Virus record (IMG/VR): IMGVR_UViG_3300042868_005134
Span: 248,001 to 312,000 of that record
Length of the DNA stretch: 64,000 bases
Strand: one strand, 5' to 3'
Shown: piece by piece, positions 950 through 19,470 of the stretch
Layout of the letters: each line of letters begins with the position of its first letter
Numbering within the stretch: the stretch's first letter is position 1
Made by a program: the position numbers and the translations under genes
Notes under the pieces: model-generated
The model's input: the letters and a program-made list of their open reading frames with translations, nothing else
Databases searched by the model: none
Told to the model about the DNA's origin: nothing

Positions 950-952
950 CAT

Positions 953-1658: not shown

Positions 1659-1717
1659 AATATTTTCCTCACAATCTTGTGTTTCATTTGGACATGTATT
1701 TTTATATAAACATATTG

Positions 1718-2680: not shown

Positions 2681-3159
2681 GAAACCTCTGACTTGCCTTT
2701 GGCAATTGGAACTACGTTAATATAACCGGCACCTCTACTAGTGTCCAGACCTTCCTCGCCTAGCATGTTTCTAACAATGTCACGGAACCAACGATCTACA
2801 ATCTCTTCGTCCGGGTCACCATCGAAACCGTATCCAGCTTGTTTCAATTGTAACACAAAAAGTTCATTCCAGTCAAGCTCAAAGAAGCCATTACGGATAT
2901 TATCTTTGTTAACGTGCGTATCCAAAACACTTACCCACGGCTCGCCTTTGGCAGTAGCACGATCTTTTGGTGTCATCTTGGCAACGGCTTCTGCCTTCTG
3001 CGCTGCCTCGGCGGCATCGAGTGCGGTTTTAGCAATCTTGGCAGAATCTTCTGCGGCTTTTAATGACGCTTCTGCTTCCTCTTTAGCCTTGGCCTTTATC
3101 TTATCGATGCCGGTTAAGCGTTCAATTATGTCTGTTATTTTCCCCATCCGTTCCCCCAT
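2677..3159 (-). CDS. hypothetical phage protein
   Basis: ORF, ATGA-coupled to rnh. Confidence 0.7.
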   Translation of the reverse strand: MGERMGKITDIIERLTGIDKIKAKAKEEAEASLKAAEDSAKIAKTALDAAEAAQKAEAVAKMTPKDRATAKGEPWVSVLDTHVNKDNIRNGFFELDWNELFVLQLKQAGYGFDGDPDEEIVDRWFRDIVRNMLGEEGLDTSRGAGYINVVPIAKGKSEVS

Positions 3160-3995
3160 AAGTCTACGTGTAGTCTTGGGCTATAGTAATAGCCTCTTTT
3201 TAATGCTTCGTCGGCAATGTGTATACGATTACCATCATACACACTGACAACACCGCCCACAGGCATAACGTACACCGGTCCTACAAAACCTGCGTCACGA
3301 TATGCCATCACAGCTTGATCAACTTCGTCAAAGTGTTCTAACTGATCCACTACGAATTTCAAATATACAAAACCGTATTGTTGATAGTCTGCTACCACAT
3401 CGGGTTTAACAGCATCATTCCATTTTTCTCCGCTTGCGCTTAATTTAGGACTTACGCTAAATGTAATTTCTCTAAACGAGTGATACCAATTATCTAAAAA
3501 TGTTTTAAATTCTTCATGTAACGGCTGGGTACCGTTTGTTTCAAATGTTAGATTTTTTAAATCCTGCATTTTTGTATGATTCAGTAATGCGGGATATAAC
3601 TGTTGCCAGCCCAGCAAAGGCTCACCGCCTGTGATAACAAGATGTACATCGTTACCGTTGCTTTGTACCCAAGTATTTTTATTAGGTGTTAATCCCAGTA
3701 TCTTAGATACAATCTCGTCAATGGTATAATAAGGACTTAGTTCTTTGAATGCCGGATGCCAACTAGCATAGCTATCACAACCTGTGTTAACTAAGGGTAA
3801 TTGTTCAAATGTTTTGTAAAGGTGAACACTGTTAGCAATAGGTTCTACCTCGTTAGTTAGTTCGCCTTTAGGCATGCCAAATCCAGCACATTTAAAATTA
3901 CATCCGAATGTTCTTAAGAACACACTAGGTACACCAATAAATCTACCTTCGCCTTGTGCTGAATAAAATACCTCACTGATTTTTATCTTGTCCAT
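3135..3995 (-). CDS. queE: 7-carboxy-7-deazaguanine synthase (radical SAM)
   Basis: ISEVFYSAQGEG, VFLRTFGCNFKC...GCDS, VITGGEP, FETNG, VSPKL, PRLHVDLW; start trimmed to MDKIKI. Confidence 0.9.
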   Translation of the reverse strand: MDKIKISEVFYSAQGEGRFIGVPSVFLRTFGCNFKCAGFGMPKGELTNEVEPIANSVHLYKTFEQLPLVNTGCDSYASWHPAFKELSPYYTIDEIVSKILGLTPNKNTWVQSNGNDVHLVITGGEPLLGWQQLYPALLNHTKMQDLKNLTFETNGTQPLHEEFKTFLDNWYHSFREITFSVSPKLSASGEKWNDAVKPDVVADYQQYGFVYLKFVVDQLEHFDEVDQAVMAYRDAGFVGPVYVMPVGGVVSVYDGNRIHIADEALKRGYYYSPRLHVDLWGNGWGK

Positions 3996-4224
3996 CTTCT
4001 TTCTCTTTCTTAAATTCATTGTACGAAGTAGTAATACTATCCCATACTGCCCACTTAAACAACCAAGACAACAAGGATGTTAAACCTAATACTAGCAATA
4101 AAGCACCAATAATTCCAGGTAGTAGAAATCCTATAATAACAGAAGTCATAGCAATAACATAAACCTTTTGCCAAGGTTTCCATTTACTCCATTGCCATAC
4201 TACAAAATTGTAAACGTCTTTCAA
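3973..4224 (-). CDS. hypothetical membrane protein
   Basis: two hydrophobic segments. Confidence 0.7.
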   Translation of the reverse strand: MKDVYNFVVWQWSKWKPWQKVYVIAMTSVIIGFLLPGIIGALLLVLGLTSLLSWLFKWAVWDSITTSYNEFKKEKEDGQDKNQ

Positions 4225-4538
4225 TTTTTTAAACTTTCCAATGTTGCGATTTTGGCAATACGTTCTCCAAAATCTTGATCTTGTGTAATTATGTATGTTT
4301 GATGATCACTGCGATCCTGTCTGCGATCATATCGACTAAATTCTACTATTTTACCACCTATGGCATTATAGACTTTAAAGTGTAGCGTTGGTTCACTATC
4401 GATAGACTGTTTGCTAACAGCTATACCTATACCTATACTACCTTTAGATATTGTGTTATAATGTACTGGTTGTTCTTCCCGTGCGTTTTCCCAATCATCT
4501 CGCACCCATTTAATTACCATTCTTTTAAACCAGTTCAT
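4221..4538 (-). CDS. hypothetical protein
   Basis: coupled ORF. Confidence 0.7.
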   Translation of the reverse strand: MNWFKRMVIKWVRDDWENAREEQPVHYNTISKGSIGIGIAVSKQSIDSEPTLHFKVYNAIGGKIVEFSRYDRRQDRSDHQTYIITQDQDFGERIAKIATLESLKN

Positions 4539-4753
4539 TTACATATCTCCAACCAATTATCTAATTTTTTTGCTGCCTCGTCGAACTCTAAAGCCCACAC
4601 CGTAGCATATATTGTAGCATCTTCTATACGTAAGTCAAATGGTACTACGCCATTAATTCTAAAATCTTCCGGCACTCTAGTAGTAACTTCGAATTCTTGT
4701 AAATTCTTAGCACGACTAATAAAGTGATCCATTATATCTTTAGCTGTTTCCAT
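4535..4753 (-). CDS. hypothetical protein
   Basis: coupled ORF, AGGAG SD. Confidence 0.7.
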   Translation of the reverse strand: METAKDIMDHFISRAKNLQEFEVTTRVPEDFRINGVVPFDLRIEDATIYATVWALEFDEAAKKLDNWLEICK

Positions 4754-4754
4754 A

Positions 4755-5255
4755 TTACTCCTTTGGAAATTCTTGACTAAAAGGCCACGATGTATTTGGA
4801 TCGGGTCTCGGCTTTAGCTTAACATTCTCTTCAATAACTTCACCTGTTATTTCATCACAAAGGCTAACTTGATATGGAGCAATAATATGTACAGCACAAT
4901 CTTCCTCCTGCCAATCATGTTCTCCATCATAGAGCCAACCTGAGCCACCTTCGTAGTAGAGTTCTTTGAGTTCTTGTTGTTCTAATTCTGAAATGTCATC
5001 GCTGAATTCCCACTCGACACTAATGCTGTCATCGAACTCACAACCCCACCCTACATCGGTCTTAGCGTAGGCAACATCATCTCCTTCCCACGGAAGATTA
5101 CAGTCTAAGTCTTCTTCGATAAAGCCTTGACCCCAACGATATGTTTCGTCAATGTTAAACCAACTAATAGATCCATCTTCGTTTTCACGAAACATCTCTA
5201 CGTGATATACAATGCTTTTCTTTTCTAAAGGTTTTATAAGATAAACGTGGCTCAT
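4755..5255 (-). CDS. hypothetical acidic protein
   Basis: coupled ORF. Confidence 0.7.
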   Translation of the reverse strand: MSHVYLIKPLEKKSIVYHVEMFRENEDGSISWFNIDETYRWGQGFIEEDLDCNLPWEGDDVAYAKTDVGWGCEFDDSISVEWEFSDDISELEQQELKELYYEGGSGWLYDGEHDWQEEDCAVHIIAPYQVSLCDEITGEVIEENVKLKPRPDPNTSWPFSQEFPKE

Positions 5256-5425
5256 TTAAACATCCTTGCATCTAAGATAATTGCTGCACCCAAGATTAGC
5301 CATACTATTCCAGGCCAAACACTACCACCGGCGATTGCGGCAATACCAGAACCTAAGTTAACACCACCGACTAGGTAGCCGATCGTTTTACGGTTACGAC
5401 CAAACCATTCAAAAAACTTATTCAT
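5252..5425 (-). CDS. small membrane protein (57 aa, not in ORF track)
   Basis: Manual translation MNKFFEWFGRNRKTIGYLVGGVNLGSGIAAIAGGSVWPGIVWLILGAAIILDARMFK; TAATG and ATGA overlaps. Confidence 0.7.
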   Translation of the reverse strand: MNKFFEWFGRNRKTIGYLVGGVNLGSGIAAIAGGSVWPGIVWLILGAAIILDARMFK

Positions 5426-5538
5426 TATATTTCCTTAATGTAGTATTGTGAAGCAGGGTATGTTTGTTGTAGCCATTCTAACAAGCCTTCTTCGACTGGC
5501 AAGCGAATGCTTTCAAACTTGTTTGTAATATATTTCAT
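5425..5538 (-). CDS. small hypothetical protein (37 aa, not in ORF track)
   Basis: MKYITNKFESIRLPVEEGLLEWLQQTYPASQYYIKEI; ATGA overlap with folE stop. Confidence 0.6.
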   Translation of the reverse strand: MKYITNKFESIRLPVEEGLLEWLQQTYPASQYYIKEI

Positions 5539-6281
5539 CGCGGAGCAAACTCCTGTTGCATCTTAATGTTGTCAAAGAATTCTTTCTTAGTACCCATGTC
5601 TGTATTAAATGCGCCTTTGAGTACTGTAGTCTGTGTCAATGAGCTATGTGCCATAATGCCACGATTCTCACAGCATCCGTGTGTGGCTTGAATATACACT
5701 GCTACGTTTTCTGATTCAGTAGCTTTGCTAATCTCACGGGCAATGTCGTTACAAAGTTCCTCCTGGAGAGTACCGCGTCGAGCACACCACTGAGCGATCC
5801 GTGTGTATTTCGAGAGACCAATAAGTTTATTAGCGGCAATGATACCGATGTAGGCAACCCCAGATACAGGCTGGTGATGATGAGAACACATACTTCGAAG
5901 TTCACTACGTACCACAAGCATACCTTCGTAACGGTCCTCTGAATCATTGGGAAATGCTGTTGCGTCTGGTGCTCTTTCATATCTTCCTGCCATAATTTCA
6001 TTAAAATACATTTTAGCAAGACGTCTTGCGGTGCCTTTACTGTTGGGATCATTCTCGCGATCAATTAGTAACTTATCTAAGATTTGTTCGAATGCCGGTG
6101 TTGCTTCGTCAATTAGTTTTTCTACGTCGCCTTCGTGTAGATAATCACTGATGTTATCGCCAGCCCAAAACCGTTTGTTATCACGTTTCATCTTAAAGCG
6201 AAGATGATCTCCTAGATATGCTTCTTGATAACCGCCATCACCTGCCATTGCGTCAAGTGCTGTTTCTTTTTTATCTGTCAT
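5535..6281 (-). CDS. folE: GTP cyclohydrolase I
   Basis: SMCSHHHQP, IGLSKYTR, LQEEL, HGCCENRG motifs. Confidence 0.93.
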   Translation of the reverse strand: MTDKKETALDAMAGDGGYQEAYLGDHLRFKMKRDNKRFWAGDNISDYLHEGDVEKLIDEATPAFEQILDKLLIDRENDPNSKGTARRLAKMYFNEIMAGRYERAPDATAFPNDSEDRYEGMLVVRSELRSMCSHHHQPVSGVAYIGIIAANKLIGLSKYTRIAQWCARRGTLQEELCNDIAREISKATESENVAVYIQATHGCCENRGIMAHSSLTQTTVLKGAFNTDMGTKKEFFDNIKMQQEFAPR

Positions 6282-6324
6282 TTTATTTTCCTATGTTAAG
6301 GCAGAGGTCATTGCCATTTGTATT

Positions 6325-6354
6325 AGTATACACTATTATTTAGGTTTTTGTCAA
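6325..6354 (-). promoter_or_regulatory. sigma70-type promoter TTGACA-18-TATACT with CTAAATA in spacer, upstream of folE
   Basis: -35 at 6349-6354, -10 at 6325-6330, TAAATA at 6337-6342. Confidence 0.7.
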
Positions 6355-7137
6355 CCTTAGTAATGTATTTTTCTTAACTGCTTCTTTCAAAACATTTAAA
6401 TTTATATCTAGTGTTTCTGCGTACTTTAATAAGGCACTAGTATCTTTGGGAAAACACATACCGCCGAATCCGTTGTACCCATCTGGACCCGGTACTTGGG
6501 TATGGCTGATGTTAATGCGATTGTCTTTGGCAACCATGCCTCGAATTCTATTCCAGTCATGACCTTGCGCTTTTGCCAATTGACACATCTCGTTCATAAA
6601 AACTACCTTGGTTGCTAGAAACGAATTAATAATATATTTTACCATGGCAGCTTCGCCAATAGTACAGAACACTGAATCTACATTTGGTTTGGTATATTTT
6701 ATAACACGTTCTGCTTCTCTTTGATAGGCCAGTGTGCTACCGCCAATAATAGCCCAGTTTTCTTTGGCATAATCCTGAGCAGCATTAGCGGCAGTTAAAA
6801 ATTCAGGCACATGTACTAGATTGGAATATTGGGTTTGTAAATATTCGTATACATTGGGAGTAGCTGTCACTTTTGAAATGATGACCCCTTTAAAGTTTTT
6901 TAAATTAGTCAACGTAGATACTAGGGGCAGAGTATTACAACTTCCATCATCATTCATGGGACTAGGTACACAAACAAACACAGCTTCGGCATCTGTTAAA
7001 TCAGCGTATGTGCTGTTAAAACCTTTACTAGGATCTGTATCGATAATTACCAGGTTGGCAAATCCTTCATAGTTGGAGGCAATAGCACTACCAACAAAGC
7101 CGCATCCCACGATACCAATTTTTGGCAGATCAAACAT
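6340..7137 (-). CDS. ugd: UDP-glucose/GDP-mannose dehydrogenase family protein (short form lacking C-terminal domain)
   Basis: GIVGCGFVG Rossmann, PEFL, KYIINSFLATKVVFMNE, GFGGMCFPKD catalytic Cys; start trimmed to MFDLPK. Confidence 0.85.
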   Translation of the reverse strand: MFDLPKIGIVGCGFVGSAIASNYEGFANLVIIDTDPSKGFNSTYADLTDAEAVFVCVPSPMNDDGSCNTLPLVSTLTNLKNFKGVIISKVTATPNVYEYLQTQYSNLVHVPEFLTAANAAQDYAKENWAIIGGSTLAYQREAERVIKYTKPNVDSVFCTIGEAAMVKYIINSFLATKVVFMNEMCQLAKAQGHDWNRIRGMVAKDNRINISHTQVPGPDGYNGFGGMCFPKDTSALLKYAETLDINLNVLKEAVKKNTLLRLTKT

Positions 7138-7411
7138 TATTTTCTTTCTCCCATTCACCTCTACCATGATCCCAGTGTCGATTATCGTAAAAATTAAAAT
7201 GTACACAATAACCAAACAGGCCTGCTTCTAAGTCTAGTCCCGCATGACTTTGACGTACAGTCCAATTGAACATGAGAGACATTAATGTGAAATCTCGAGT
7301 AACTTCTAATTCAATATGTTTATTTTTAAATGGAGTATTGTATGCACGGCACCACAAATTCTTAAAGGTGTTACTCCAAGGGTTGCGGATGTTAAAGTTA
7401 AATGAAATCAT
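7130..7411 (-). CDS. hypothetical protein
   Basis: coupled ORF. Confidence 0.65.
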   Translation of the reverse strand: MISFNFNIRNPWSNTFKNLWCRAYNTPFKNKHIELEVTRDFTLMSLMFNWTVRQSHAGLDLEAGLFGYCVHFNFYDNRHWDHGRGEWEKENNV

Positions 7412-7590
7412 ATGTAATCTACTGATTTTTTAGTTCGCAGTTTTCTACACTCGGCTTTAACTTCGGCTGGATAGTCGGGATGAAATTCTGACAAACTACA
7501 ATCGTAGATTCTGCCTCCATCATCCGGCACTGTTACTAGTATTAAGAATGCCAATACTAGAAATATTAGTGCTACTACTGCTTGTTTCAT
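7408..7590 (-). CDS. small protein with N-terminal TM/signal segment
   Basis: hydrophobic N-terminus; ATGA overlaps. Confidence 0.65.
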   Translation of the reverse strand: MKQAVVALIFLVLAFLILVTVPDDGGRIYDCSLSEFHPDYPAEVKAECRKLRTKKSVDYI

Positions 7591-7907
7591 GAATTGATAT
7601 CTCCTTGATATCGTGGAATCATATGTATGTGGGGATATTTACCGTCTTGCCCGGCAATATCTCCCACACTTTGAACTAGGTTAAATCCCTGCCACTTTTC
7701 AGATTCGATTCCGTCGTAGCCCCACTTATAGGCTGCTCTGTAAGTTTCGAAGAGACAGTCCATTGATTTTTGGGTAGGCACAAAACACAAATACCCTTCA
7801 CAGGGTGCTGACGGGTCTTTAAAAATCCAAAACTTTGTTGTTCTGTATTCGATTTCTTTCCAAGGAGCGCTGCCATCATTTAGTGCCTTTTCGATATCTG
7901 TTGTCAT
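7587..7907 (-). CDS. HIT-family nucleotide hydrolase (degenerate)
   Basis: FNLVQSVGDIAGQ...YPHIHMIPR. Confidence 0.75.
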   Translation of the reverse strand: MTTDIEKALNDGSAPWKEIEYRTTKFWIFKDPSAPCEGYLCFVPTQKSMDCLFETYRAAYKWGYDGIESEKWQGFNLVQSVGDIAGQDGKYPHIHMIPRYQGDINS

Positions 7908-7913
7908 TACAAT

Positions 7914-8117
7914 TTACGATACTAGACTTTGTGCTAATATTTTAAGTTCGTCATCGGTCATAAAAAACTGATAAGTTGAGGTCATGTCAACTTCTCCGTT
8001 TATATTTTTACATTCTTGTATAAACTCAAGAGCATTTAGTGTAGCTGGGTTTACACATTTCCAGCTTTTAACCCTCAGTCTAAATCCTGCTGTATCTTTA
8101 ATTATGCTTTCTTTCAT
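7914..8117 (-). CDS. hypothetical protein
   Basis: coupled ORF. Confidence 0.65.
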   Translation of the reverse strand: MKESIIKDTAGFRLRVKSWKCVNPATLNALEFIQECKNINGEVDMTSTYQFFMTDDELKILAQSLVS

Positions 8118-8353
8118 TGTAGTGTCCTTTTGTCTTCTCCGGCTAGACTGTTAATAAGTTTTTCAGCCCATTCGGGTTCTTCTTCCAGTAATTCTTCTAA
8201 GTCTACTTGACGACTTTGTTCGAACAGCTCACCTGAATGTGCCATTTTGGTAATTTCAGCAATCATTTCTTCAAGCTCTTCTTGCGAGCCTTCAAAATCG
8301 TCAAAAGCGCCTGGCGCAAATTCGATAGTGAGTGGTTTCTTTTCATCAGTCAT
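8114..8353 (-). CDS. hypothetical acidic protein
   Basis: coupled ORF. Confidence 0.7.
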   Translation of the reverse strand: MTDEKKPLTIEFAPGAFDDFEGSQEELEEMIAEITKMAHSGELFEQSRQVDLEELLEEEPEWAEKLINSLAGEDKRTLQ

Positions 8354-8831
8354 AGTCGCCTTTTATACGTTCAAAAGTTTTATATTTTTCCAAAGCATTG
8401 ATATATTCATCAAACAGTTTCTTTAGCTTAGGATGCTTCTTCTCTAGTATAACATCTCTTTCAGGAATACACAAGACTTTTTCGATTGTGTTTAACCGTT
8501 CTTCTAAATCTCTATCATTTATAACAACTTTGCCTTTGACAGTTAAAGTTGCATCTTTTTCCAAAACAATTTCGTCTTTGCCAGATGGCACAGTCATAAT
8601 AGGTTTGCCATTGCTATTATTAAATTGAGTGCTTGAATTAGTCCAACTAGTACCATTCAATCCGCTTGTTAAAAACTGACCACTGCTGCCACCACCTAGA
8701 CTTGTATTATTAGTAGTATAAACTGTTCCAACTGTTAGTGGTGTTGTAGCAAGTGGTATTGTACCGTAGCCAACACTCACTGTACTGCCAACAAACCCAT
8801 TACTGACGACGTTGTTCAAGGTATTGCTCAT
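8346..8831 (-). CDS. hypothetical protein (S/T/G-rich N-terminus, helical C-terminus)
   Basis: coupled ORF. Confidence 0.7.
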   Translation of the reverse strand: MSNTLNNVVSNGFVGSTVSVGYGTIPLATTPLTVGTVYTTNNTSLGGGSSGQFLTSGLNGTSWTNSSTQFNNSNGKPIMTVPSGKDEIVLEKDATLTVKGKVVINDRDLEERLNTIEKVLCIPERDVILEKKHPKLKKLFDEYINALEKYKTFERIKGDYD

Positions 8832-9279
8832 TGTGTATCCATTTGTTCTTTACAAGAAAGCCCCATTCTCTTTTTTGTGGTCCTGGCATAAACAATGTCC
8901 ACGCCGTTATATTAGGATCAAGCTCAATGCGATGATATGATGTGGCTTTACAAATACGGAAATGTCCAGGCCCCCGCCACTTTGCTATCTCAGTTATCTT
9001 TCGACCGTCTGAATTAAATTGTGGAATCCATTCCCAATAGCCGCCTGACAGTATTAAAGTAAAATAAGGCCATGGATGATCATGTACGTCATCGGGATCC
9101 GATTTAAGAAACTTGTGTAGAAACACATTAAAGGGAAAACGGTTTCTGTCTTTAAGGAAGATATAATAACGTTCGAGATATGGCTCTTCACTAACTCTGT
9201 CCATAATAATTCTTTTTCTGTCATGCTGTTCTAACCAAGCAAAAAACTTATTCTTTATCTTTTGGATTATCATAATCAT
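8800..9279 (-). CDS. cupin-like metal-binding protein
   Basis: VHDHPW...GGYWE...HRIEL (HxH..E..H pattern). Confidence 0.6.
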   Translation of the reverse strand: MIMIIQKIKNKFFAWLEQHDRKRIIMDRVSEEPYLERYYIFLKDRNRFPFNVFLHKFLKSDPDDVHDHPWPYFTLILSGGYWEWIPQFNSDGRKITEIAKWRGPGHFRICKATSYHRIELDPNITAWTLFMPGPQKREWGFLVKNKWIHNEQYLEQRRQ

Positions 9280-9637
9280 CCTTTACAAGTGTATACACTG
9301 TTCGAAAATTTCTTAATGCGATTTCTAGTCCAGGATACTGTTTGCACATATTTTGAACACGTTGCCAGTCCGGAAACAAGTCTACAAATTCTACAGAGCT
9401 TCCCCAACTAATTTGATAATCGGTGTTAAGTGTAATAGTATCGCTAGATAACGTTGTATATGTAACCCCACTTCCACTGCCAGTTATTGATATAGTGTTC
9501 ATATTTGTATCAATATAATAACCAGACGATGCGTGTAAATCAGAAGGTAACTCTATAGTAAACGTGTCTCCCAATGCTATAAAAGACTCAGTTGGCAAGT
9601 CGCTTAATAAGTTCTGTTGCTGAGAAGAATTGCTCAT
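9248..9637 (-). CDS. hypothetical protein
   Basis: coupled ORF. Confidence 0.65.
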   Translation of the reverse strand: MSNSSQQQNLLSDLPTESFIALGDTFTIELPSDLHASSGYYIDTNMNTISITGSGSGVTYTTLSSDTITLNTDYQISWGSSVEFVDLFPDWQRVQNMCKQYPGLEIALRNFRTVYTLVKDDYDNPKDKE

Positions 9638-10688
9638 GTAATACCTCTGTTTGTTTTTTTAATTGTGGCAAAAACTGTTCGTAATGATTCATATACTGTA
9701 TGATTTTATTACACACTGAAGGTCTTGCGAAGTCGTATGCTTCAAAACTTTCAGTCCACTCACTAGGATACTTGAATGTGTCAAATGCCATCTCGCTGTA
9801 GCTTAATCTATCCGGCACCATAGGAATGGCACCTACCACAGCACCTTCGTACCAGCTAATGCCCAGCGTCTCTTGAAGATTTGCACTAAACACTATTTTA
9901 GCACGACCTAACAGTTTGTGATATTCATGTTTGTCTAGTTGCTGATCTTGACAAACGACAAATTCGTATTGAGGTAGGTGCGTAGCCAAGTCACGAAAAA
10001 TGTCAACTTGCTTCTCCGGAGCAATGCGATGAGGAAACAAAATTAGATCACGCTTGGGCGTAGTCCAGTAGTTGTCCAAAGTATCTTGCATATACTCCAT
10101 GGGCCAGCCTGTTCGCACAATCTTTCCATCGGTAATTAAATCAGACTTATCCTCTTCGTGCCACGGATTTTCTGTTTTATAACCATCTTCTAATAAGTTA
10201 TCTACAAACATATCAATATGGAACTTGGTAGCAAAATAGTTGTGATCAAATGCGTGGAAAAAACTCTTCTCAGCATGTCTTACCCATTTCCTCTTACCAA
10301 CAAGACGTCCTAAAAAATCTTGTGGATCATATGATCCAGCATGCCATAAACCATGTGTAACTACCGGAATGCCCAGCAGTTCACTCATGTATTTGAGATT
10401 GATGACGCCAGGGTGCCAAGCATCAGTAAATATAAAATGATCACCAGGGCTAACTGATCCGGAGCAAAATAAGCGACCCATCTGCTCCACTTGACTAGCC
10501 TTGTATATATTAGTGCCGCCAAAGTTGAGAAATGCGCCAGGAGTGGTAGCACTAGGAATGTCCGTAGGACCTGATATAATGTTGACATTGTGTCCTGCCT
10601 TTCGTAAGAGAGCAGGTACATGGCGCTTCCATTGCCCCGTGTACCTTGTCTCTACTGCTTCTAGATCAACGAGAAAAACTTTGCTCAT
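9588..10688 (-). CDS. GT-B glycosyltransferase (GT4-like)
   Basis: ILFPHRIAPEKQ and ETLGISWYE (ExxGxxxxE) motifs; real start MSKVFL at 10688. Confidence 0.75.
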   Translation of the reverse strand: MSKVFLVDLEAVETRYTGQWKRHVPALLRKAGHNVNIISGPTDIPSATTPGAFLNFGGTNIYKASQVEQMGRLFCSGSVSPGDHFIFTDAWHPGVINLKYMSELLGIPVVTHGLWHAGSYDPQDFLGRLVGKRKWVRHAEKSFFHAFDHNYFATKFHIDMFVDNLLEDGYKTENPWHEEDKSDLITDGKIVRTGWPMEYMQDTLDNYWTTPKRDLILFPHRIAPEKQVDIFRDLATHLPQYEFVVCQDQQLDKHEYHKLLGRAKIVFSANLQETLGISWYEGAVVGAIPMVPDRLSYSEMAFDTFKYPSEWTESFEAYDFARPSVCNKIIQYMNHYEQFLPQLKKQTEVLHEQFFSATELIKRLAN

Positions 10689-10953
10689 TGCGTGGACCGC
10701 GATAGTTGTTATTTCCACCGCTTCGATTAAATTCGCCACGCGGCTTGCGAGTACCATCCCATGGCTTCTTTGGACGAGTACTGTAATAGAAATTGTTCCA
10801 AATTTGACTATTACGATTGTAAAGATTTGCCTCGTTAAAGTCACACATCTCGAAACGACAAAAATCGTGAAACTTTTCCAAGTCGTCGAAAATTTTAACA
10901 ATATCAGGACGGTTTTCTAAGTAGTTAACGTCTTTGTAATTATTCTTAGCCAT
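10666..10953 (-). CDS. hypothetical protein with basic G/N/R-rich tail
   Basis: start trimmed to MAKNNY, GGAAAG SD-like. Confidence 0.65.
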   Translation of the reverse strand: MAKNNYKDVNYLENRPDIVKIFDDLEKFHDFCRFEMCDFNEANLYNRNSQIWNNFYYSTRPKKPWDGTRKPRGEFNRSGGNNNYRGPRNEQSFSR

Positions 10954-10966
10954 TATAGCTTTCCTT

Positions 10967-11362
10967 TTAATACTTAATAAATGAACCATTTTCTCCGTCT
11001 TCGGAGACTTCAATCCAAACCTCACGGTCGGGATACCTTTGTGAGACTTGAGCGTGTAAATCATCGCTCATCATTTCGCAACTTTTGTAATCTAGCGACA
11101 AAACACCTTGTGTGCTAGAATACAGTTTTTCAAGCCATCGCTTGAATTGTATAAATTCCACATCTCTGTCATTGTGGGTGACACTAAGCCATACCCTAAA
11201 ATGAAAAATATGGCGATGAGGATTAGCCAAAAACGAAACATCATATTCATCTCCTGTTGCTAAGTTTGGATCTGTTGCGGCTGCTGGATATTTGTGAATA
11301 CCTTCTTTACGAAAGGTTACCCAAATCATTTTGTTAGGTCTAATATCTTGTTTAATAATCAT
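10967..11362 (-). CDS. QueD-like T-fold protein with LxxxHRHxF motif (DpdL-like candidate)
   Basis: FLANPHRHIFHFRV, DRDVEF, SCEM, VSEDGENG; HRH in place of QueD CxxxHGH. Confidence 0.7.
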   Translation of the reverse strand: MIIKQDIRPNKMIWVTFRKEGIHKYPAAATDPNLATGDEYDVSFLANPHRHIFHFRVWLSVTHNDRDVEFIQFKRWLEKLYSSTQGVLSLDYKSCEMMSDDLHAQVSQRYPDREVWIEVSEDGENGSFIKY

Positions 11363-11583
11363 TCTTTTCTGAACCTTGGAGTTAAAATCTCTGCATCAAC
11401 TTTATTTAAAAATTGACAATTTTCTAATCTTACTAACAGTTCATCTAACGAACCAGTATGATCTTCAACTATAACTCTAATTGGTTTAGTAGTGTCTGTT
11501 CTGTCTTCTAGAATGTATGTTAGTTTTCCATTTGCAGCTAAAATTTGCTCGCTGAAATATTCTTGTAAATTAATTAAATTCAT
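11359..11583 (-). CDS. hypothetical protein
   Basis: start trimmed to MNLINL (ATGA overlap). Confidence 0.6.
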   Translation of the reverse strand: MNLINLQEYFSEQILAANGKLTYILEDRTDTTKPIRVIVEDHTGSLDELLVRLENCQFLNKVDAEILTPRFRKE

Positions 11584-12098
11584 GTTGGTGTATCCTGTGT
11601 ATATTGATCCCAATAGGTAAATTTGTCTTTACTCATTAGGCTTTGTAGGTGATGAGTCCATACGCCAGGGTTAGTAGCACCCCAAGTACGATCATCTAGT
11701 TTGAGTGTTGCGTTATAGTTAAGTTGACTAATGTAAGGCAACTTTACACTAATCATAGGAATAAACCTATCTTGTTCGCAGTAACCGCTTTCGATTACGC
11801 CTTCAATATGTTCTACACCGAAGTCTAAAGCGACCCAGTAATTTTCTTTAAGACATCCGAGTATAACTGTATCCCATACCGCATATTCTTCTTGTGTCAT
11901 TGCTTTTGGATTGAAGCTCTGACTAGTACCAAAATAAATTTGCTTAATGTCGATGTCTCTGTTTGCTTGTTGTAGTATTTCCTCTAAAGGAGGAGTGCCA
12001 ACAACAAACAAAGTTTTCATACCATAAGCAATAGTATGCTCGACCTCATACCCTGTAAAGTAAACAACATTCTGTCGTTCTTCAGTGTTTAGTCCCAT
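11580..12098 (-). CDS. hypothetical protein inside the modification cluster (172 aa)
   Basis: globular-looking ORF coupled to MDR gene; no motif recognised. Confidence 0.75.
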   Translation of the reverse strand: MGLNTEERQNVVYFTGYEVEHTIAYGMKTLFVVGTPPLEEILQQANRDIDIKQIYFGTSQSFNPKAMTQEEYAVWDTVILGCLKENYWVALDFGVEHIEGVIESGYCEQDRFIPMISVKLPYISQLNYNATLKLDDRTWGATNPGVWTHHLQSLMSKDKFTYWDQYTQDTPT

Positions 12099-12970
12099 TT
12101 AATATAACCTCTGCTGTAACCGCTTGGACGATCCATACCATCCGCAAACGCTTGCTGCCATTCAGTGTTACGATTGTAACACTTTGTCCAGAAACTATCA
12201 ACCTCAAGATAGCCGTTTTCAATCATGAACACTGCTTCTTTCATACATTGGAAAAATCCATCAGTGCGTGGACTTGGCCGAACTGTAGTACAGGCTTTCC
12301 AAAGTTGAGCTTGAGCTTCCTCACGACTAACTGCTTTGCCAACACCGTCAATAATAAGGGCATTGTTATTTAGGTTGATGTCTATACCTAACGCATATTT
12401 GCCACTCAAGTCGATAACTATATCATAACTTTCGCTAGTACCAATCAATAGTTTATCACCCCACAGTTCCGTATTGCTAGACCCTAGTACATTGATGTCT
12501 TGTTTGCGTAATATCAATCTGTGATAAGCAACCCACGCAAGGAATCCACTACCAATAATCAATATCTTGCCATTTCTTTTATTAATTTCGCCTGCGGCTT
12601 GTTCCACTACATTGATACCGCAAGCAACCGGTTCTAGTATATAGCGAGGATGTGCTTCGGGTACTAGGACATACTCTTTAGATCTTACATTATAAATATC
12701 TGCGTATGCGGGTTCGCCTCGGGTGGCAACAAAGTCTCCAAAGTTGACGTCTTTAATATTAGCACCAATTCCAATAACTTGTCCAAGTCCTTCGTGCCCT
12801 TGCATGTGTAAAGGTAACGGCCCAAAGTCTCCTACCATCATGTCGATATCACTACGACATACACCAGTCATAACACTTCGAACACAAATTTCATCTTCAG
12901 TTAACGGATCTACATGAAATTCGATTTCAGTAAAACTACCATTGCCTGTTGTTTGTAAAATTCTATTCAT
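12089..12970 (-). CDS. zinc-dependent MDR-family dehydrogenase
   Basis: GVCRSD, GHEGLG, LEPVAC, IIGSGFLA; structural-Zn 4-Cys lobe absent. Confidence 0.85.
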   Translation of the reverse strand: MNRILQTTGNGSFTEIEFHVDPLTEDEICVRSVMTGVCRSDIDMMVGDFGPLPLHMQGHEGLGQVIGIGANIKDVNFGDFVATRGEPAYADIYNVRSKEYVLVPEAHPRYILEPVACGINVVEQAAGEINKRNGKILIIGSGFLAWVAYHRLILRKQDINVLGSSNTELWGDKLLIGTSESYDIVIDLSGKYALGIDINLNNNALIIDGVGKAVSREEAQAQLWKACTTVRPSPRTDGFFQCMKEAVFMIENGYLEVDSFWTKCYNRNTEWQQAFADGMDRPSGYSRGYIKWD

Positions 12971-13842
12971 AGTTTTTCTATTTGTTCGTGAATCCACATA
13001 TCTTGCTGATATTGATTGTTCCAGAACTCATTATTATTTAGGTTTTTAACAGCAGTCTCTACCATAGTTTTGTAGGCAGATTCTGGACACAATCCTAGCT
13101 CATGTCTTATGGCACTATTTCTCATGCTAAACGCAATACTACTGTCGTCATGATCTAGATTAGTTTTCCAGTTGGCACTTAGTATCCACGTAATGTTCTT
13201 ATTCTCGAATTCTAAATGACAAAAGTCGTCTACGTCATACGTGCCGGTATGATTGACTACACCGTAATCTGTACTGTCAATATCTTCTAGTTTATAGTTT
13301 TGAAGTGATTGTGCTTTAAGTTTAACACCATGTTTATAGTCTGTTAACGCACAATAGTAACTAAGCATATGAGGAATTAAGTCTCTGCTAACTCCGCCAA
13401 ATGCTAATTCTTTTGTAGTAAACCAACTACCGGGTTGTGGAATACGATTAGCGTTATTCCAACGAACATATACTCGTTCGCTTTGATCAGCTTGACTTTT
13501 GAATAGTTTAATCTCGTCTCTGTACTGATTATTTTTAACCATCATGAAACGTGTGTCGGGAAAGTCTTCTACTAGACAGAACCAACACTTGGCATCTTGT
13601 ACACCTGGCTTTTCAATTAGAACAATTTTACACTTGTTAGCAATAGTTCTTGCTACCAGTTCATGTGTAAAATTTGGTGTACAAATAACGACAATATCAT
13701 ATTCGCCTGTGACAATATCAGCAGTTTTAAATGTTGCGTTCTTTTCCGGATTAGAATCCACAGTATCGATTTCATAGCCGAGGCCGGTGAATACGGAATG
13801 ATATAGTTGTCCTATACCCATTCCTACAATTAAGGCCTTCAT
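12967..13842 (-). CDS. Gfo/Idh/MocA-family oxidoreductase
   Basis: ALIVGMGIG, ICTPNFTH, LIEKPG, GGVSRDLIPH. Confidence 0.85.
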   Translation of the reverse strand: MKALIVGMGIGQLYHSVFTGLGYEIDTVDSNPEKNATFKTADIVTGEYDIVVICTPNFTHELVARTIANKCKIVLIEKPGVQDAKCWFCLVEDFPDTRFMMVKNNQYRDEIKLFKSQADQSERVYVRWNNANRIPQPGSWFTTKELAFGGVSRDLIPHMLSYYCALTDYKHGVKLKAQSLQNYKLEDIDSTDYGVVNHTGTYDVDDFCHLEFENKNITWILSANWKTNLDHDDSSIAFSMRNSAIRHELGLCPESAYKTMVETAVKNLNNNEFWNNQYQQDMWIHEQIEKL

Positions 13843-14090
13843 TCTTTTTTACTTTCTTCGTATTGTTTAAACAATCTAGTAACCGGTTCCATTCGTTCTT
13901 GGAACACATCCGGCGCACCTATGGCCGCACGTTCTAAATCCCATTCACTAGGGAAATGTCGCAAGATACTATATGCTTCTCCGCGAACTTTTTTAGGAAC
14001 TCTAGGATAGTCTTTGGTATTGTGGGCTATATCCTGTAAGAATCTCTTGGCCCACATTACGGAACGATATCTTTCATCTGGTAATGTCAT
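13839..14090 (-). CDS. hypothetical phage protein
   Basis: coupled ORF MTLPDERYRS...LRHFP. Confidence 0.75.
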   Translation of the reverse strand: MTLPDERYRSVMWAKRFLQDIAHNTKDYPRVPKKVRGEAYSILRHFPSEWDLERAAIGAPDVFQERMEPVTRLFKQYEESKKE

Positions 14091-15783
14091 GATGTATTTC
14101 GTTTTCTAGTTGATCTAGTTTGTCAATTTGGTCTTCGGCAAATTCGCCATCTTCACTTGATTGTACACTCTCTTCATCTTCTTCGTCAAATAGATTGGCA
14201 AAGTGTGTGCTAGCATTAACTGTTTTTTTACCAATAGCGCCCCGTGTTCCTGGAATAGCTTGCCAAAATTTATCAAAGCCGTCAATGATAGCATCAGCTG
14301 TTGCTCTATCAGGCGCACTAAAAATAGCATCCACTACGTCTTTAAAGTATACACGTTCGAATCTTTCATCTACTAGCATGGCAGGACATAGACCAGCATC
14401 ATACTGTCGATTAGCTTCTTGTACACTATTCAAATGTAGCCACACATTATGACCCATCATAATTGCGTATGTGAAACTATCCCACGATGTTTTACCTTCT
14501 TTACCTATCTTATTTAGGTCGCCTGGTCCGTAGATACAAATATCTTTAACTTGTACGCCATCCATCAAGGGGCTGGTAGTAAACGATTTAAAGTGTCCAT
14601 CTTGTACAACAACATCCTGAAACAATCTAGTATCTTTACTATACTTCTTATTGTCTAAACTAGGCAACATGCGATATAACCATTTTTGTCTATCTACAAT
14701 TTCAGTTTGTACATAAATCTGTCCGTTGGCAGTGGCAAGGAACGGACTGGCACAGTCAAAGCTGATTGTAAACTTGGGATTGTGGTACTTACGAACAGCA
14801 CGTTGAATGTCTGTCAGCAGTAATGCCCACTCTAATTTACTTGTACCCAAGAAGTGCATCCAGTCTTGATGACCTTCTTCTAGTAATCCATCAAACTTTA
14901 GAGCTACTAGTCTGCGTAGAACTAAATCTACGTCACACATATTCTGTCCACCCATAGCCCAGCCATTAAACGGTCTTTCATATTTTGTTGGATCGCAGAA
15001 GTCTTTCATTTGTTGATACCAATCTTCTGCCTGTGCGTGATTCTCACCTTGTAGAACGTTTAAGAACTTACAAGCACCTGTACGATGTTTGATAAAGTAT
15101 TCATTGTTGTATTTGGTAGCGGCAACAGCTTGTTCATAACTAGCAATGCCACTGTTCTTGGCACCCACTGGACTGCGTCCAACCCATGCTGGAATATCAA
15201 GTACCATGCCGTAATCCATTAAGGCATCCATCCAAGCTAATACTTGTTCACGTTTCTTTTGTGCCGCATCTAGTTTTGCTTGAAAAAGTTTAACATGGTC
15301 AATTTTAGTATACTTGACATTTCCGTTCTTGTCTGTTTTAGGATCACCAGTTGGGTGTAATTGTGGAACAAGTTCAACACCCTTGGCAACTGCTTCTGCC
15401 ATGCGTTGTGCTACTTCCTCACCTACTGGATCGTTCCATTCACCTTCCCACACGCCTTTACCAATTTGGAAACCTCCAGAGTCGCCTAATACCCAACTAG
15501 TTGAGCGATCTCTATTGCGAAACATATCTTCGCTTGGATCTGGCTTAGTCAAGTCTAAGTTAGCGTGTCCAGCTGAATACAAACAATGGTCAAAGTAAAA
15601 TGTCGCATTGGGATTCAAATAGTTCATGGCTTCAATGCCTAGTGGTCCAAAGCTGGCAGGTATGCGAGCAGGGTCTACATAGTTATTGTAGCGTTGCTTT
15701 CCGATATACGTACTATAAAAGCCAGATGTTGCCGGCAAAAAGTAGGCATAATCATTTTGATGTGCGGTTAAATTTTTATTCAT
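14074..15783 (-). CDS. dpdA: TGT-fold 7-deazaguanine DNA transglycosylase (DpdA-like)
   Basis: LGDSGGFQ, MVLDIP, LNVLQG, GWAMGG, MHFLG, SFDCASP motifs; no tRNA-TGT CxCxxC Zn site; linked to folE/queE. Confidence 0.8.
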   Translation of the reverse strand: MNKNLTAHQNDYAYFLPATSGFYSTYIGKQRYNNYVDPARIPASFGPLGIEAMNYLNPNATFYFDHCLYSAGHANLDLTKPDPSEDMFRNRDRSTSWVLGDSGGFQIGKGVWEGEWNDPVGEEVAQRMAEAVAKGVELVPQLHPTGDPKTDKNGNVKYTKIDHVKLFQAKLDAAQKKREQVLAWMDALMDYGMVLDIPAWVGRSPVGAKNSGIASYEQAVAATKYNNEYFIKHRTGACKFLNVLQGENHAQAEDWYQQMKDFCDPTKYERPFNGWAMGGQNMCDVDLVLRRLVALKFDGLLEEGHQDWMHFLGTSKLEWALLLTDIQRAVRKYHNPKFTISFDCASPFLATANGQIYVQTEIVDRQKWLYRMLPSLDNKKYSKDTRLFQDVVVQDGHFKSFTTSPLMDGVQVKDICIYGPGDLNKIGKEGKTSWDSFTYAIMMGHNVWLHLNSVQEANRQYDAGLCPAMLVDERFERVYFKDVVDAIFSAPDRATADAIIDGFDKFWQAIPGTRGAIGKKTVNASTHFANLFDEEDEESVQSSEDGEFAEDQIDKLDQLENEIHHDITR

Positions 15784-15970
15784 CTGTTAAGTAATCGTTA
15801 TGCTCTTCGATCCTCCAAATATGGATGTTTTGAGGTACGTTGCCTTTCTTCTCAACGTACCCAATCCTAACATCCACATTTAATGTTCCAAGATCGGACA
15901 TAAGCTCATTAACTTCTTTTACAAGGTCCTTGAGCTTAATGACTTTTGACTTTACATTGTCGTCTTTCAT
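15776..15970 (-). CDS. hypothetical protein
   Basis: coupled ORF. Confidence 0.65.
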   Translation of the reverse strand: MKDDNVKSKVIKLKDLVKEVNELMSDLGTLNVDVRIGYVEKKGNVPQNIHIWRIEEHNDYLTDE

Positions 15971-16698: not shown

Positions 16699-16715
16699 AA
16701 TGATTCCTTTGTGTT

Positions 16716-19459: not shown

Positions 19460-19470
19460 AAACCCTTCTC

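Follow-up and report, generated by a model that had tools for sequence, protein, structure and literature searches.

A jumbo-phage gene block that pairs 7-deazaguanine DNA-modification genes with a predicted glycosyltransferase, and its inferred role in making a sugar-linked guanine replacement

The window analysed here is a 64,000-nucleotide stretch (positions 248,001 to 312,000) of the IMG/VR virus record IMGVR_UViG_3300042868_005134, and the block of interest occupies window positions 3135-15783 on the minus strand, its genes overlapping or separated by gaps that are mostly under 60 nt. The initial annotation had described this block as encoding a DpdA-like transglycosylase, two oxidoreductases, a 172-aa unknown, a QueD-like protein, a GT-B glycosyltransferase, a cupin, a HIT protein, a UDP-sugar dehydrogenase, FolE and QueE, and we confirmed that all of the named genes are present, with one correction of identity (QueD-like to DpdL) that matters. 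It had not mentioned at least 12 small ORFs interspersed in the block. The features are as follows.

14074..15783 (minus): DpdA-like DNA/7-deazaguanine transglycosylase (TGT superfamily, long 500-570 aa subfamily, acidic C-terminal tail)
13839..14090 (minus): conserved 83-aa ORF of unknown function, directly after the DpdA-like gene
12967..13842 (minus): Gfo/Idh/MocA NAD(P) oxidoreductase (accessory, lineage-specific)
12089..12997 (minus): MDR zinc alcohol-dehydrogenase-like oxidoreductase (accessory, travels with Gfo)
11580..12098 (minus): 172-aa protein with a predicted orphan fold (u172), a near-universal phage partner of DpdL plus the glycosyltransferase
10967..11362 (minus): DpdL (QueD-like T-fold; proposed 7-carboxy-7-deazaguanine decarboxylase)
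10666..10953 (minus): conserved 95-aa ORF of unknown function between DpdL and the glycosyltransferase, with a basic Arg/Gly-rich tail
9588..10694 (minus): predicted GT-B (GT4-like, retaining-type) glycosyltransferase
9248..9637 (minus): 129-aa ORF of unknown function, conserved in the close clade
8800..9279 (minus): metal-binding cupin (accessory, frequent)
8346..8831 (minus): 161-aa ORF of unknown function with a low-complexity N-terminus, conserved in the close clade
7587..7907 (minus): HIT-like small protein (weak assignment; optional)
6340..7215 (minus): NDP-sugar-dehydrogenase-like protein lacking the C-terminal UDP-binding domain (likely start near 7137)
5535..6281 (minus): GTP cyclohydrolase I (FolE)
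3135..4019 (minus): QueE-like radical SAM enzyme (7-carboxy-7-deazaguanine synthase)

The DpdA-like protein gave no Pfam, PHROG or PDB sequence hit, yet the TGT motifs DSGGFQ, LDxP, VLQG, GWAMGG, HFLG and SFDCASPF are invariant across 33 diverse homologues, and profile alignment with hhalign gave 94 % against the DpdA of Acidovorax phage ACP17 and 91.6 % against the validated DpdA2 of VH7D plus ACP17 DpdA. It is 32.6 % identical to EST35_0316 of Pseudomonas jumbo phage PA5oct (Wroclawvirus). Because the enzyme belongs to the TGT superfamily, whose founding members act on tRNA, and because glycosylated queuosine exists in eukaryotic tRNA, the target could in principle be tRNA or another RNA, giving a phage-specific glycosylated queuosine-like modification. 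The motif register of Escherichia coli Tgt does align, but the hhalign value with Tgt was only 22 %, the closest detectable relatives being DNA-acting DpdA2-type proteins; together with the conserved replication-gene context and the G-linked restriction resistance of PA5oct DNA described below, this makes an RNA target very unlikely.

The gene initially annotated as QueD-like is DpdL, with the exact LxxxHRHxF signature, a conserved His/Glu set, and 54.5 % and 32 % identity to the DpdL proteins of ACP17 and Cellulophaga phage phiST, respectively. Canonical QueD, QueC, QueF and Gat were not found anywhere in the window, and canonical QueD was also not found in most related loci. The window does not encode the complete FolE/QueD/QueE route that had been proposed, and, the T-fold gene being DpdL rather than QueD, CDG is probably not the end point. 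FolE was identified by Pfam (8.8e-40) and NCBIfam (1.9e-40) profiles and has an 11/12 promoter-like site just upstream, so that it may have its own promoter; QueE matched phrog_2076 (1.5e-52) and, below cut-offs, the NCBIfam QueE models (1e-12 to 5e-8).

The glycosyltransferase gene encodes 368 aa and does not correspond to the 437-aa ORF starting with TTG. Its AF2 model has a pLDDT of 91.5, and the top Foldseek hits are the GT4/GT5 enzymes glycogen synthase, BshA, MshA and PglA, with E values down to 1e-10; the EX7E motif (E275/E283) and R223/K228 are conserved. The 172-aa protein is also modelled with confidence (pLDDT 91) but has no significant PDB fold match; its only BFVD match is gp122 of ACP17 (hhalign 99 %), it is also found in PA5oct, and the family comprises 806 clusters in the representative library. 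The Gfo/Idh/MocA protein was recognized by Pfam PF01408 (8e-6) and PF22725 (2.6e-4), and the MDR protein by ADH_N (1e-8) and phrog_2640, with catalytic Cys/His-Glu and GxGxxA motifs readable in its translation. The cupin matched phrog_4786 (9e-37) and has invariant H66-D67-H68, E83 and H116, whereas the HIT assignment rests on a Pfam E value of 0.17 and an HIHMIP motif. The NDP-sugar-dehydrogenase-like protein has the N-terminal and central domains (PF03721, 5e-9; PF00984, 1.3e-20; TIGR03026, 1.9e-35 but below cut-off) and the catalytic Cys motif GFGGMCFPKD; in most relatives a 34–39 % identical copy lies between the polymerase and clamp genes. Of the small ORFs, the 83-aa and 95-aa proteins gave no family hit and no Pfam hit, respectively, the 129-aa protein gave only chance-level Pfam matches (E 0.03–0.06) and the 161-aa protein shows weak similarity to PA5oct. 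The gene initially annotated as a sliding clamp is plausible as such by position, its match being to phrog_12062, a family of unknown function.

Conservation of the neighbourhood across related contigs had been named in advance as a check, and we examined it in close and diverse IMG/VR loci. In the close clade, 27 of 27 loci keep the DpdA-like, Gfo, MDR, u172, DpdL, glycosyltransferase and cupin genes, in the same order in the nine loci where order was examined; the 161-aa ORF is likewise present in 27 of 27, the 83-aa ORF in 27 of 27 with enough flank (but rarely outside the clade) and the HIT-like gene in 9 of 27. Among 40 diverse loci, DpdL was found in 39 and the glycosyltransferase in 31 by tblastn, u172 in 35, the HIT-like gene in 19, the cupin in 16, and Gfo and MDR in only 4 each. 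By tblastn the 95-aa ORF was detected at the same position in 88 related loci, and the 129-aa ORF in 31 close and 4 diverse loci. Of the eight glycosyltransferase-negative loci that keep DpdL, four were examined: in one, a divergent member of the same glycosyltransferase family (hhalign 100 %, E=1e-49) was identified with confidence, and its tblastn relatives occur in the others, two of which also give sub-threshold Pfam glycosyltransferase hits. All four carry an SDR NDP-sugar enzyme (epimerase/dehydratase). Overall, the glycosyltransferase family lies beside DpdA-like and DpdL genes in all 27 close loci and in essentially all diverse ones.

The same pairing is found in phages already in culture, where every full-length hit to the glycosyltransferase family lies 10 nt to 2.8 kb from a DpdL (Phosso, the PA5oct group, ACP17, X1, BUDD, BCSR5 and BUCT-ZZ01). 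PA5oct and ACP17 share the core genes at 33–54 % identity (DpdA-like or DpdA2-like, glycosyltransferase, DpdL, QueE, u172 and FolE), and PA5oct also shares the synteny running from polymerase and clamp to RNase H; within the stretches fetched around their loci, both lack the Gfo, MDR, cupin and UGDH-like genes, PA5oct having instead a short SDR-like gene and a phosphoribosyltransferase-domain gene. In bacterial genomes, including those of alphaproteobacteria, all 29 glycosyltransferase-family loci with adequate flank also carry a DpdA-like gene, and 24 of the 35 loci carry DpdL. Eight bacterial loci have the glycosyltransferase and DpdA-like genes without DpdL within 6 kb, so the acceptor may not always be the DpdL product. 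In some alphaproteobacterial loci the related DpdA-like/glycosyltransferase/DpdL trio lies next to a CoiA-like nuclease-domain protein or a RecD2-like helicase. A TGT-like DpdA also inserts a 7-deazaguanine into DNA in the bacterial Dpd restriction-modification system (DpdA/B/C plus DpdD-K), but here there is no DpdB or DpdC and the partners are DpdL and a glycosyltransferase.

The known phage systems combine DpdA1-4 and FolE/QueD/QueE with QueC, QueF, ArcS, DpdL, DpdM or DpdN (Hutinet 2019; Cui 2023). The present block resembles them in its FolE, QueE, DpdL, DpdA2-homologous transglycosylase and location among replication genes, but its transglycosylase belongs to a long, divergent subfamily that Pfam TGT does not detect, and the glycosyltransferase, the 172-aa and 95-aa proteins and the lineage-variable enzymes, which we infer to tailor a sugar, are additional. 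None of the eight described derivatives carries a sugar, and we found no report of a glycosylated 7-deazaguanine in the searchable literature. The DNA of phiST has been shown to contain plain 2'-deoxy-7-deazaguanosine (dDG) (PMC10516641). Like the present block, phiST has FolE, QueE and a DpdL of the same signature and lacks QueC, but it uses the short DpdA3 (hhalign only 17 % to this family) and has neither a glycosyltransferase-family gene nor a u172 homologue (CGPG_00066 is unrelated). PA5oct DNA, whose modified base is unidentified, resists several restriction enzymes in a pattern suggesting modified G and is targeted by nucleases that sense hypermodified DNA (PMC12191111). Co-expression of dpdA and dpdL from ACP17 or phiST in E. 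coli gave no dDG, and the authors suggested that further enzymes may be needed.

One possible explanation is that the end product in DNA is plain dDG, as in phiST, and that the glycosyltransferase and redox enzymes act on a virion or host-envelope component or another metabolite, sitting in the block only as neighbouring early or middle genes. dDG is the only product experimentally linked to a DpdL-encoding phage, 7-deazaguanine offers no classical glycosylation handle, GT4 relatives act on small molecules, lipids and polymers, and unrelated small ORFs interrupt the block. However, the glycosyltransferase family was found only next to DpdA-like and/or DpdL genes, in unrelated phage lineages, with two different DpdA subtypes and in bacterial chromosomes; in Phosso it stays 21 nt from DpdL although the DpdA-like gene is about 170 kb away; and phiST lacks it. 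We consider this explanation unlikely. Alternatively, the module may make a soluble glycosylated pterin or 7-deazapurine metabolite that is not a DNA base, comparable to cyanobacterial pterin glycosides or the deazapurine nucleoside antibiotics, which would act on host physiology or as a nucleotide-pool intermediate. FolE with a T-fold enzyme, NAD(P) reductases and a glycosyltransferase resembles pterin-glycoside logic, the glycosyltransferase family is acidic (median pI 5.7), the phosphoribosyltransferase-domain gene of PA5oct lies next to DpdL and hints at nucleotide-level chemistry, and a Methylobacterium locus has a gene with a sub-threshold match to Vut_1 (vitamin-uptake transporter) beside DpdL. 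Against this, a DpdA-like transglycosylase homologous to DNA-modifying DpdA2 is always present, the block lies between the polymerase/clamp genes and the RNase H-like exonuclease gene, DpdL lacks the catalytic Cys needed for PTPS or QueD chemistry, and PA5oct DNA itself is restriction-resistant; we regard this possibility as still less likely.

Our current working hypothesis, to which we would give a probability of about 0.5, is that the block is a DNA hypermodification module that replaces guanine with a sugar-bearing 7-deazaguanine. Homology shows that FolE and QueE supply 7-carboxy-7-deazaguanine (QueD must come from elsewhere in the ~380-kb genome or from the host), that a member of the DpdL family is present, whose proposed but undemonstrated role is to remove the carboxylate and give 7-deazaguanine, that the long DpdA-like transglycosylase among the replication genes is the base-exchange enzyme, and that the GT4-like enzyme keeps its NDP-sugar-binding residues. 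That a sugar is placed on the deazaguanine, and ends up on DNA, is inferred from sequence and gene context without chemical data for any glycosyltransferase-containing member. The failure to find canonical QueD in the window or in most related loci, the many unrelated small ORFs that interrupt the block and the possible separate promoter of FolE also count against this reading. The most likely site is the C7 side, either as a direct C-glycoside on the electron-rich pyrrole carbon or through an oxygen added by the cupin or the 172-aa protein, although 7-deazaguanine has no obvious O or N handle at C7 and GT4 enzymes are not known C-glycosyltransferases. Transfer may occur on the free base before insertion by the DpdA-like enzyme or on DNA afterwards, the evidence favouring neither; the acidity of the glycosyltransferase family, and the absence of T4 alpha- or beta-glucosyltransferase among the 50 listed Foldseek matches, mean that DNA as the acceptor is not indicated. 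The concept is shared with the glucosyl-hydroxymethylcytosine of T-even phages and with arabinosyl-hmC phages, in which a non-canonical base is further glycosylated by a phage GT-B enzyme using an NDP-sugar and sugar identity varies between related phages, but here the base would be a purine analogue installed by base exchange rather than a pyrimidine made at the nucleotide level, the glycosyltransferase is not detectably related to T4 AGT or BGT, and the acceptor may be the free base.

The initial interpretation, of a glycosylated 7-deazaguanine, is thus supported only in part. The functional tie between the glycosyltransferase and the 7-deazaguanine module is supported, and the replacement of the oxidoreductases by SDR epimerase/dehydratases in relatives fits the reading that they build or tailor a sugar. 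The suggestion that the MDR or Gfo enzymes reduce the C7 carboxylate to a hydroxymethyl handle is not supported, since no carboxylate-activating enzyme is present and Gfo and MDR are missing from most relatives that keep the glycosyltransferase. In our view the Gfo/Idh/MocA, MDR and truncated NDP-sugar-dehydrogenase-like enzymes would tailor the sugar in this clade, the missing UDP-binding domain hinting at tailoring after transfer, and the sugar would differ between lineages. The recurrence of the pairing in hundreds of phages and some bacteria points to an undescribed sugar-bearing guanine replacement in DNA, the likely benefit of which would be evasion of restriction and other DNA-sensing defences.

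All genes within positions 1-20000 of the window run on the minus strand, and a tightly packed run of about 27 ORFs lies between a family-B DNA polymerase, accompanied by a 243-aa clamp-position protein, and a T4-RNase-H-like exonuclease. The features of this region whose positions are needed here are as follows.

16734-19439, minus strand, family-B DNA polymerase (phrog_262, 5e-198)
15967-16698, minus strand, 243-aa clamp-position protein (phrog_12062, a family of unknown function)
14074-14200, minus strand, C-terminus of the DpdA-like protein
~11230, minus strand, LxxxHRHxF signature of the DpdL
10666-10953, minus strand, conserved 95-aa ORF between DpdL and the glycosyltransferase (GT)
9588-10694, minus strand, GT, 368 aa
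6340-7215, minus strand, truncated NDP-sugar-dehydrogenase-like (UGDH-like) protein
3135-4019, minus strand, QueE-like radical SAM enzyme
1718-2680, minus strand, T4-RNase-H-like exonuclease (phrog_107, 8e-40)

First-pass Pfam and PHROG scans identified FolE, the QueE-like radical SAM enzyme, the NDP-sugar-dehydrogenase-like protein, a Gfo/Idh/MocA protein, an MDR ADH_N protein and a cupin (phrog_4786), but gave no assignment for the proteins of 569, 172, 131 and 368 aa. A megablast search of the block against phage genomes found no match. The remainder of the window encodes typical jumbo-phage functions, including a clamp loader and tail fibres, and host-like proteostasis and metabolism genes cluster at 26602-40038, namely ferritin/Dps (26602-27036), a Lon-like protease (28936-31200), peptide deformylase (31163-31696), DnaJ (31659-32513), PhoH (36262-36981, the only plus-strand gene seen), dCMP deaminase (37008-37460) and GroES (39649-40038). 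No QueC, QueF, Gat or canonical QueD was found in the window by motif or Pfam. Terminator-like sites were not enriched over shuffled sequence (10 found against a mean of 9.0), whereas promoter-like sites were (63 found against a mean of 42.7, sd 6.2), although such consensus matches do not define an operon structure. The initial annotation, which had described a same-strand, tightly coupled block combining 7-deazaguanine insertion with sugar transfer and redox enzymes, is confirmed as an observation, with the refinements set out below.

The 569-aa protein has no Pfam, PHROG, NCBIfam or PDB sequence match, even at relaxed thresholds, and single-sequence and profile HMM searches of this protein, the GT and the cupin against PDB sequences yielded only chance hits. 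However, when aligned with 32 homologs of 30-91% identity, it retains a set of invariant or nearly invariant TGT-core motifs (DSGGFQ, LDxP, VLQG, GWAMGG, HFLG and SFDCASPF), including D101-S-G-G-F-Q106 and, containing the downstream nucleophile aspartate, S341-F-D343-C-A-S-P-F, in a register that matches both Escherichia coli Tgt and DpdA2 in hhalign. Profile comparison gave a probability of 94% against the DpdA of Acidovorax phage ACP17 and of 91.6% (E=8e-7) against ACP17 DpdA together with the DpdA2 of Vibrio phage VH7D, an enzyme shown to insert preQ0 and preQ1 into DNA (PMC10516641), but only 22% against E. coli Tgt and 17% against phiST DpdA3, although the motif register is right. The subfamily of the ACP17 enzyme was itself inferred from its similarity to the DpdA2 proteins of nt-1 and VH7D. 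The 569-aa protein therefore belongs to a long, divergent DpdA-like subfamily, the cultured members of which are hypothetical proteins of PA5oct-like Pseudomonas jumbo phages (32.6% identity), Vibrio phage 2.275.O and Sinorhizobium phage Phosso. A search for related loci with the PA5oct DpdA-like protein alone returned no pattern match. PA5oct shares the gene order polymerase, clamp-position gene, DpdA-like, ..., QueE, ..., RNase H. In Vibrio phage 2.275.O (locus L082, 14905-29416) the DpdA-like gene sits with QueF, a YhhQ-type transporter, QueC, an amidotransferase-like gene, FolE, QueE and QueD, with no detectable DpdL or GT-family homolog; the subfamily is therefore not restricted to the DpdL/GT route and probably inserts preQ1-type bases in that phage. 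The family ends in a conserved, strongly acidic tail with a KLDxLE element, which resembles the replisome-interaction tails of phage replication proteins and may tether the enzyme to the fork.

The 131-aa protein, which had been described initially as QueD-like, reads L-A-N-P-H-R-H-I-F, and this is exactly the LxxxHRHxF signature used to separate DpdL, the proposed 7-carboxy-7-deazaguanine (CDG) decarboxylase, from QueD, which has CxxxHGH (Cui et al., 2023; PMC10516641). The protein is 54.5% identical to ACP17 DpdL and 32% identical to phiST DpdL (CGPG_00067) and shares their conserved His/Glu set, and the motif is present in 116 related loci. The window therefore encodes FolE, QueE and DpdL, alongside the DpdA-like protein and without QueC, but not QueD. 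In PA5oct, FolE and QueD sit about 55 kb from the DpdA-like block; a search with a QueD profile did not locate a QueD for the present phage, its 383-kb contig not being among the 80 loci retained. The QueE-like protein has cysteines spaced C40-x3-C44-x36-C81 instead of the usual CX3CX2C or CX14CX2C cluster motif, and the long insert would lie within the radical-SAM cluster loop.

The GT gene is the 368-aa frame; a 437-aa ORF opening with TTG is an artefact of ORF calling, because homologs align from residue 3-6 onward. An AF2 model built on 25 homologs, all from IMG/VR loci, is confident (pLDDT 91.5, pTM 0.89) and predicts a two-Rossmann-domain GT-B fold. Of 171 PDB matches at E<=1e-3, the 50 best listed are all glycosyltransferases, mostly retaining enzymes of the GT4/GT5 type, led by archaeal glycogen synthase (E=1e-10), BshA, MshA and PglA. 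The EX7E motif and the basic residues that bind the NDP-sugar phosphates in this type of enzyme are conserved among 25 sequences, E275 being nearly invariant and E283 invariant with EX7E spacing, and R223 and K228 invariant. The window protein nevertheless falls below the gathering score of Pfam Glycos_transf_1 (E=0.091, 12.7 bits against 26.4), and a word-indexed homolog search returned only near-identical relatives (at least 78% identity) without informative annotation. Neither T4 alpha- nor beta-glucosyltransferase appears among the 50 listed Foldseek matches, and no sequence hit to them was found.

The 172-aa protein (u172) also gives a confident model (pLDDT 91.1) but has no significant PDB fold match, the best hit (E=0.05, TM 0.36) being to fragments of TIM-barrel aldolases, and its only match among viral models is ACP17 gp122. 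The family comprises 806 clusters at 50% identity, almost all of them stand-alone. The possibility that u172 is the equivalent of phiST CGPG_00066 was rejected on the basis of an hhalign probability of 0.4%.

The initial annotation had named conservation of the gene neighbourhood as a test of its proposal, and we found that the DpdA-like protein has more than 590 relatives in IMG/VR. Among the 80 closest loci (81-100% identity), every one of the 27 with at least 8 kb downstream keeps the genes for a conserved 83-aa ORF, Gfo, MDR, u172, DpdL, GT, cupin and a conserved 161-aa ORF, in the same order in the nine loci where order was examined. The UGDH-like gene is present in 26/27; it sits between HIT and FolE in the window and in its closest relative, but in most of the clade it sits between the DNA polymerase and the clamp-position gene at 34-39% identity (for example L007:8451-9221), which means either relocation or replacement by a paralog. 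In 80 more diverse loci (30-64% identity), the counts by tblastn are DpdL 39/40, u172 35/40, GT 31/40, cupin 16/40 and Gfo+MDR 4/40. Four of the eight GT-negative loci that keep DpdL were examined (L087, L090, L102 and L130). In L102 a gene of ~400 aa just passes Pfam Glycos_transf_1 (27.0 bits) and is a divergent member of the same GT family (hhalign 100%, E=1e-49), and its tblastn relatives (51-73% identical) occur in the other three, of which the L087 and L090 genes give only sub-threshold Pfam GT hits and the L130 gene none. All four loci carry a full-length SDR NDP-sugar epimerase/dehydratase, which about 20 loci have in all, and L130 alone among the fetched loci carries a radical SAM/SPASM protein (17106-18131) inside its DpdA-like/DpdL/GT block. 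The GT is therefore close to universal, while the sugar-tailoring set is lineage-specific. The 95-aa ORF at 10666-10953, which was missed initially, fills the ~270-nt 'gap' between DpdL and the GT; it has a basic Arg/Gly-rich tail and no family assignment, is conserved at that position in 88 related loci and may be a further component of the module. One 356-kb relative (L062) has a GT fragment and a full GT copy about 2 kb apart (15507-15770 and 17897-18997), and its DpdA-like reading frame as extracted (10001-11767) contains one stop codon, which could reflect a rearrangement, an insertion or an assembly error.

In the collection of cultured phages, every full-length GT-family hit lies 10 nt to 2.8 kb from a DpdL. 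These are Phosso (gap 21 nt, although its DpdA-like gene is about 170 kb away), the eleven PA5oct-like genome records, ACP17, Xanthomonas X1 and BUDD, Burkholderia BCSR5 and Synechococcus BUCT-ZZ01. ACP17, X1 and BUCT-ZZ01 pair the GT and DpdL with a DpdA2-like enzyme instead of the long subfamily. In PA5oct (locus L001, 15419-16383), DpdL is followed directly by a 172-aa protein with a partial NAD-epimerase/dehydratase domain (6e-7) and a 144-aa phosphoribosyltransferase-domain protein (2e-11), which hints at nucleotide-level handling of the deazapurine in that phage. Conversely, phiST and its relatives, RHph_I1_18, Ahp1 and D479 have DpdL and no GT-family gene, and phiST is the phage whose DNA was shown to carry plain dDG. 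A GT-profile scan of one genome per prokaryotic species found 35 loci, including isolates of Magnetospirillum, Methylobacterium, Pelagibacterium, Devosia and others; all 29 with adequate flank also encode a DpdA-like protein, and 24 of the 35 encode DpdL. In Magnetospirillum aberrantis (L271, 250-10826) the order is CoiA-like nuclease-domain protein, GT, DpdL, DpdA-like, small ORF and PTPS/QueD, with a HEPN protein also adjacent, whereas in Methylobacterium sp. EM32 (L265) the GT/DpdL/DpdA-like trio sits near a RecD2-like helicase and a gene with a sub-threshold Vut_1 (vitamin-uptake transporter) match. These could be restriction-modification-like islands or prophage remnants. Eight bacterial loci have GT plus DpdA-like without a nearby DpdL, and the possibility that the 175-aa ORF between DpdA-like and GT in Pelagibacterium is a cryptic DpdL was examined and rejected.

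Of the accessory enzymes, the cupin keeps an invariant H-x-H...E...H metal site, the MDR protein keeps the catalytic-zinc Cys/His-Glu and the dinucleotide motif, and the Gfo protein keeps its Rossmann and EKP motifs. The UGDH-like protein has the NAD-binding (PF03721, 5e-9) and central (PF00984, 1.3e-20) domains with the catalytic Cys motif GFGGMCFPKD, but it ends at residue 291, right after the central domain, without a UDP-binding domain, and scores 122 bits against TIGR03026 where the cut-off is 190; copies in relatives, of about 257 aa, likewise lack this domain. This is at least compatible with action on a sugar that is no longer nucleotide-bound. The HIT assignment rests on a partial motif only.

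The nested distribution looks like a hypermodification pathway elaborated in steps, DpdA-like + GT (+ DpdL), then u172, then cupin, then Gfo/MDR/UGDH-like or SDR enzymes, and the interchangeable DpdA subtypes and the absence of the GT from the one dDG-verified phage fit the same picture. We therefore favour a glycosylated 7-deazaguanine in DNA, with a probability of about 0.5. What the analysis establishes is homology and linkage, whereas the exchange of guanine in DNA by the DpdA-like protein, the decarboxylation of CDG by DpdL (a proposal even for the founding members), the nature of the GT acceptor, and the placing of the sugar on the base are inferred. So too is the attachment site, since C7 is the logical major-groove position but 7-deazaguanine has no heteroatom handle there, such that a C-glycoside or a prior oxygenation would be needed. 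The order of events is likewise inferred; the tight DpdL-GT adjacency and the acidic GT (median pI 5.7) lean at most weakly towards glycosylation of the free base before insertion, and pI proved uninformative in separating a DNA from a small-molecule acceptor because the DpdA-like protein is acidic too. Independent biology is consistent but not specific. PA5oct DNA resists several restriction enzymes in a way that suggests modified G, as judged without mass spectrometry, and it is attacked by nucleases that sense hypermodified DNA, while DpdA+DpdL of ACP17 or phiST expressed in E. coli made no dDG. The resistance of PA5oct DNA at G-containing restriction sites is only indirect evidence for guanine exchange by the DpdA-like protein. 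The interpretation offered by the initial annotation is partly supported, in that the link of the GT to the 7-deazaguanine module is strong but the chemistry is unproven. Its suggestion that the C7 carboxylate is reduced to a hydroxymethyl handle was rejected as unsupported, because no activating enzyme is present, DpdL is present, and Gfo and MDR are dispensable in most GT-bearing relatives.

A literature search turned up no glycosylated 7-deazaguanine and no link between a glycosyltransferase and DpdL or DpdA, although paywalled or unpublished work cannot be excluded, and Cui et al. (2023) do not mention a glycosyltransferase. The modification of DNA with 7-deazaguanines is already established, and the module described here would differ in an added glycosylation layer, inferred from homology and gene linkage. 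More tentatively, one could envisage that guanine in the DNA of a very abundant clade of uncultured jumbo phages, and likewise in cultured PA5oct-like phages, ACP17, Phosso, Xanthomonas X1/BUDD and Synechococcus BUCT-ZZ01 and in islands in Alphaproteobacteria, is replaced by a 7-deazaguanine carrying a sugar at C7. In this view the sugar may be attached through an unprecedented C-glycosidic bond formed on the DpdL product, the whole being assembled on the free base and then inserted by a specialized large DpdA, and lineage-specific sugar-tailoring enzymes would produce a family of different glyco-deazaguanines. This would be the first glycosylated purine analogue in any natural DNA.

The module is widespread, with more than 590 IMG/VR stretches matched in each of two scans and more than 8000 GT homologs at 90% clustering, and it has cultured representatives in which it is directly testable. 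Its enzymes could become tools for site-specific glyco-labelling of nucleic acids, as a transglycosylase that tolerates bulky bases, a GT acting on deazapurines and an orphan-fold partner. To our knowledge, all natural DNA glycosylations are on pyrimidines (glucosyl- and arabinosyl-hmC, base J), and all eight known DNA 7-deazaguanines carry small C7 groups or none, so that a sugar-bearing 7-deazaguanine would be a new class of DNA base. It would also address what the modified G of the therapy-candidate phage PA5oct is, why DpdA+DpdL reconstitution failed in E. coli, if further enzymes are needed, and what END-type and other modification-sensing defences recognize in these phages.
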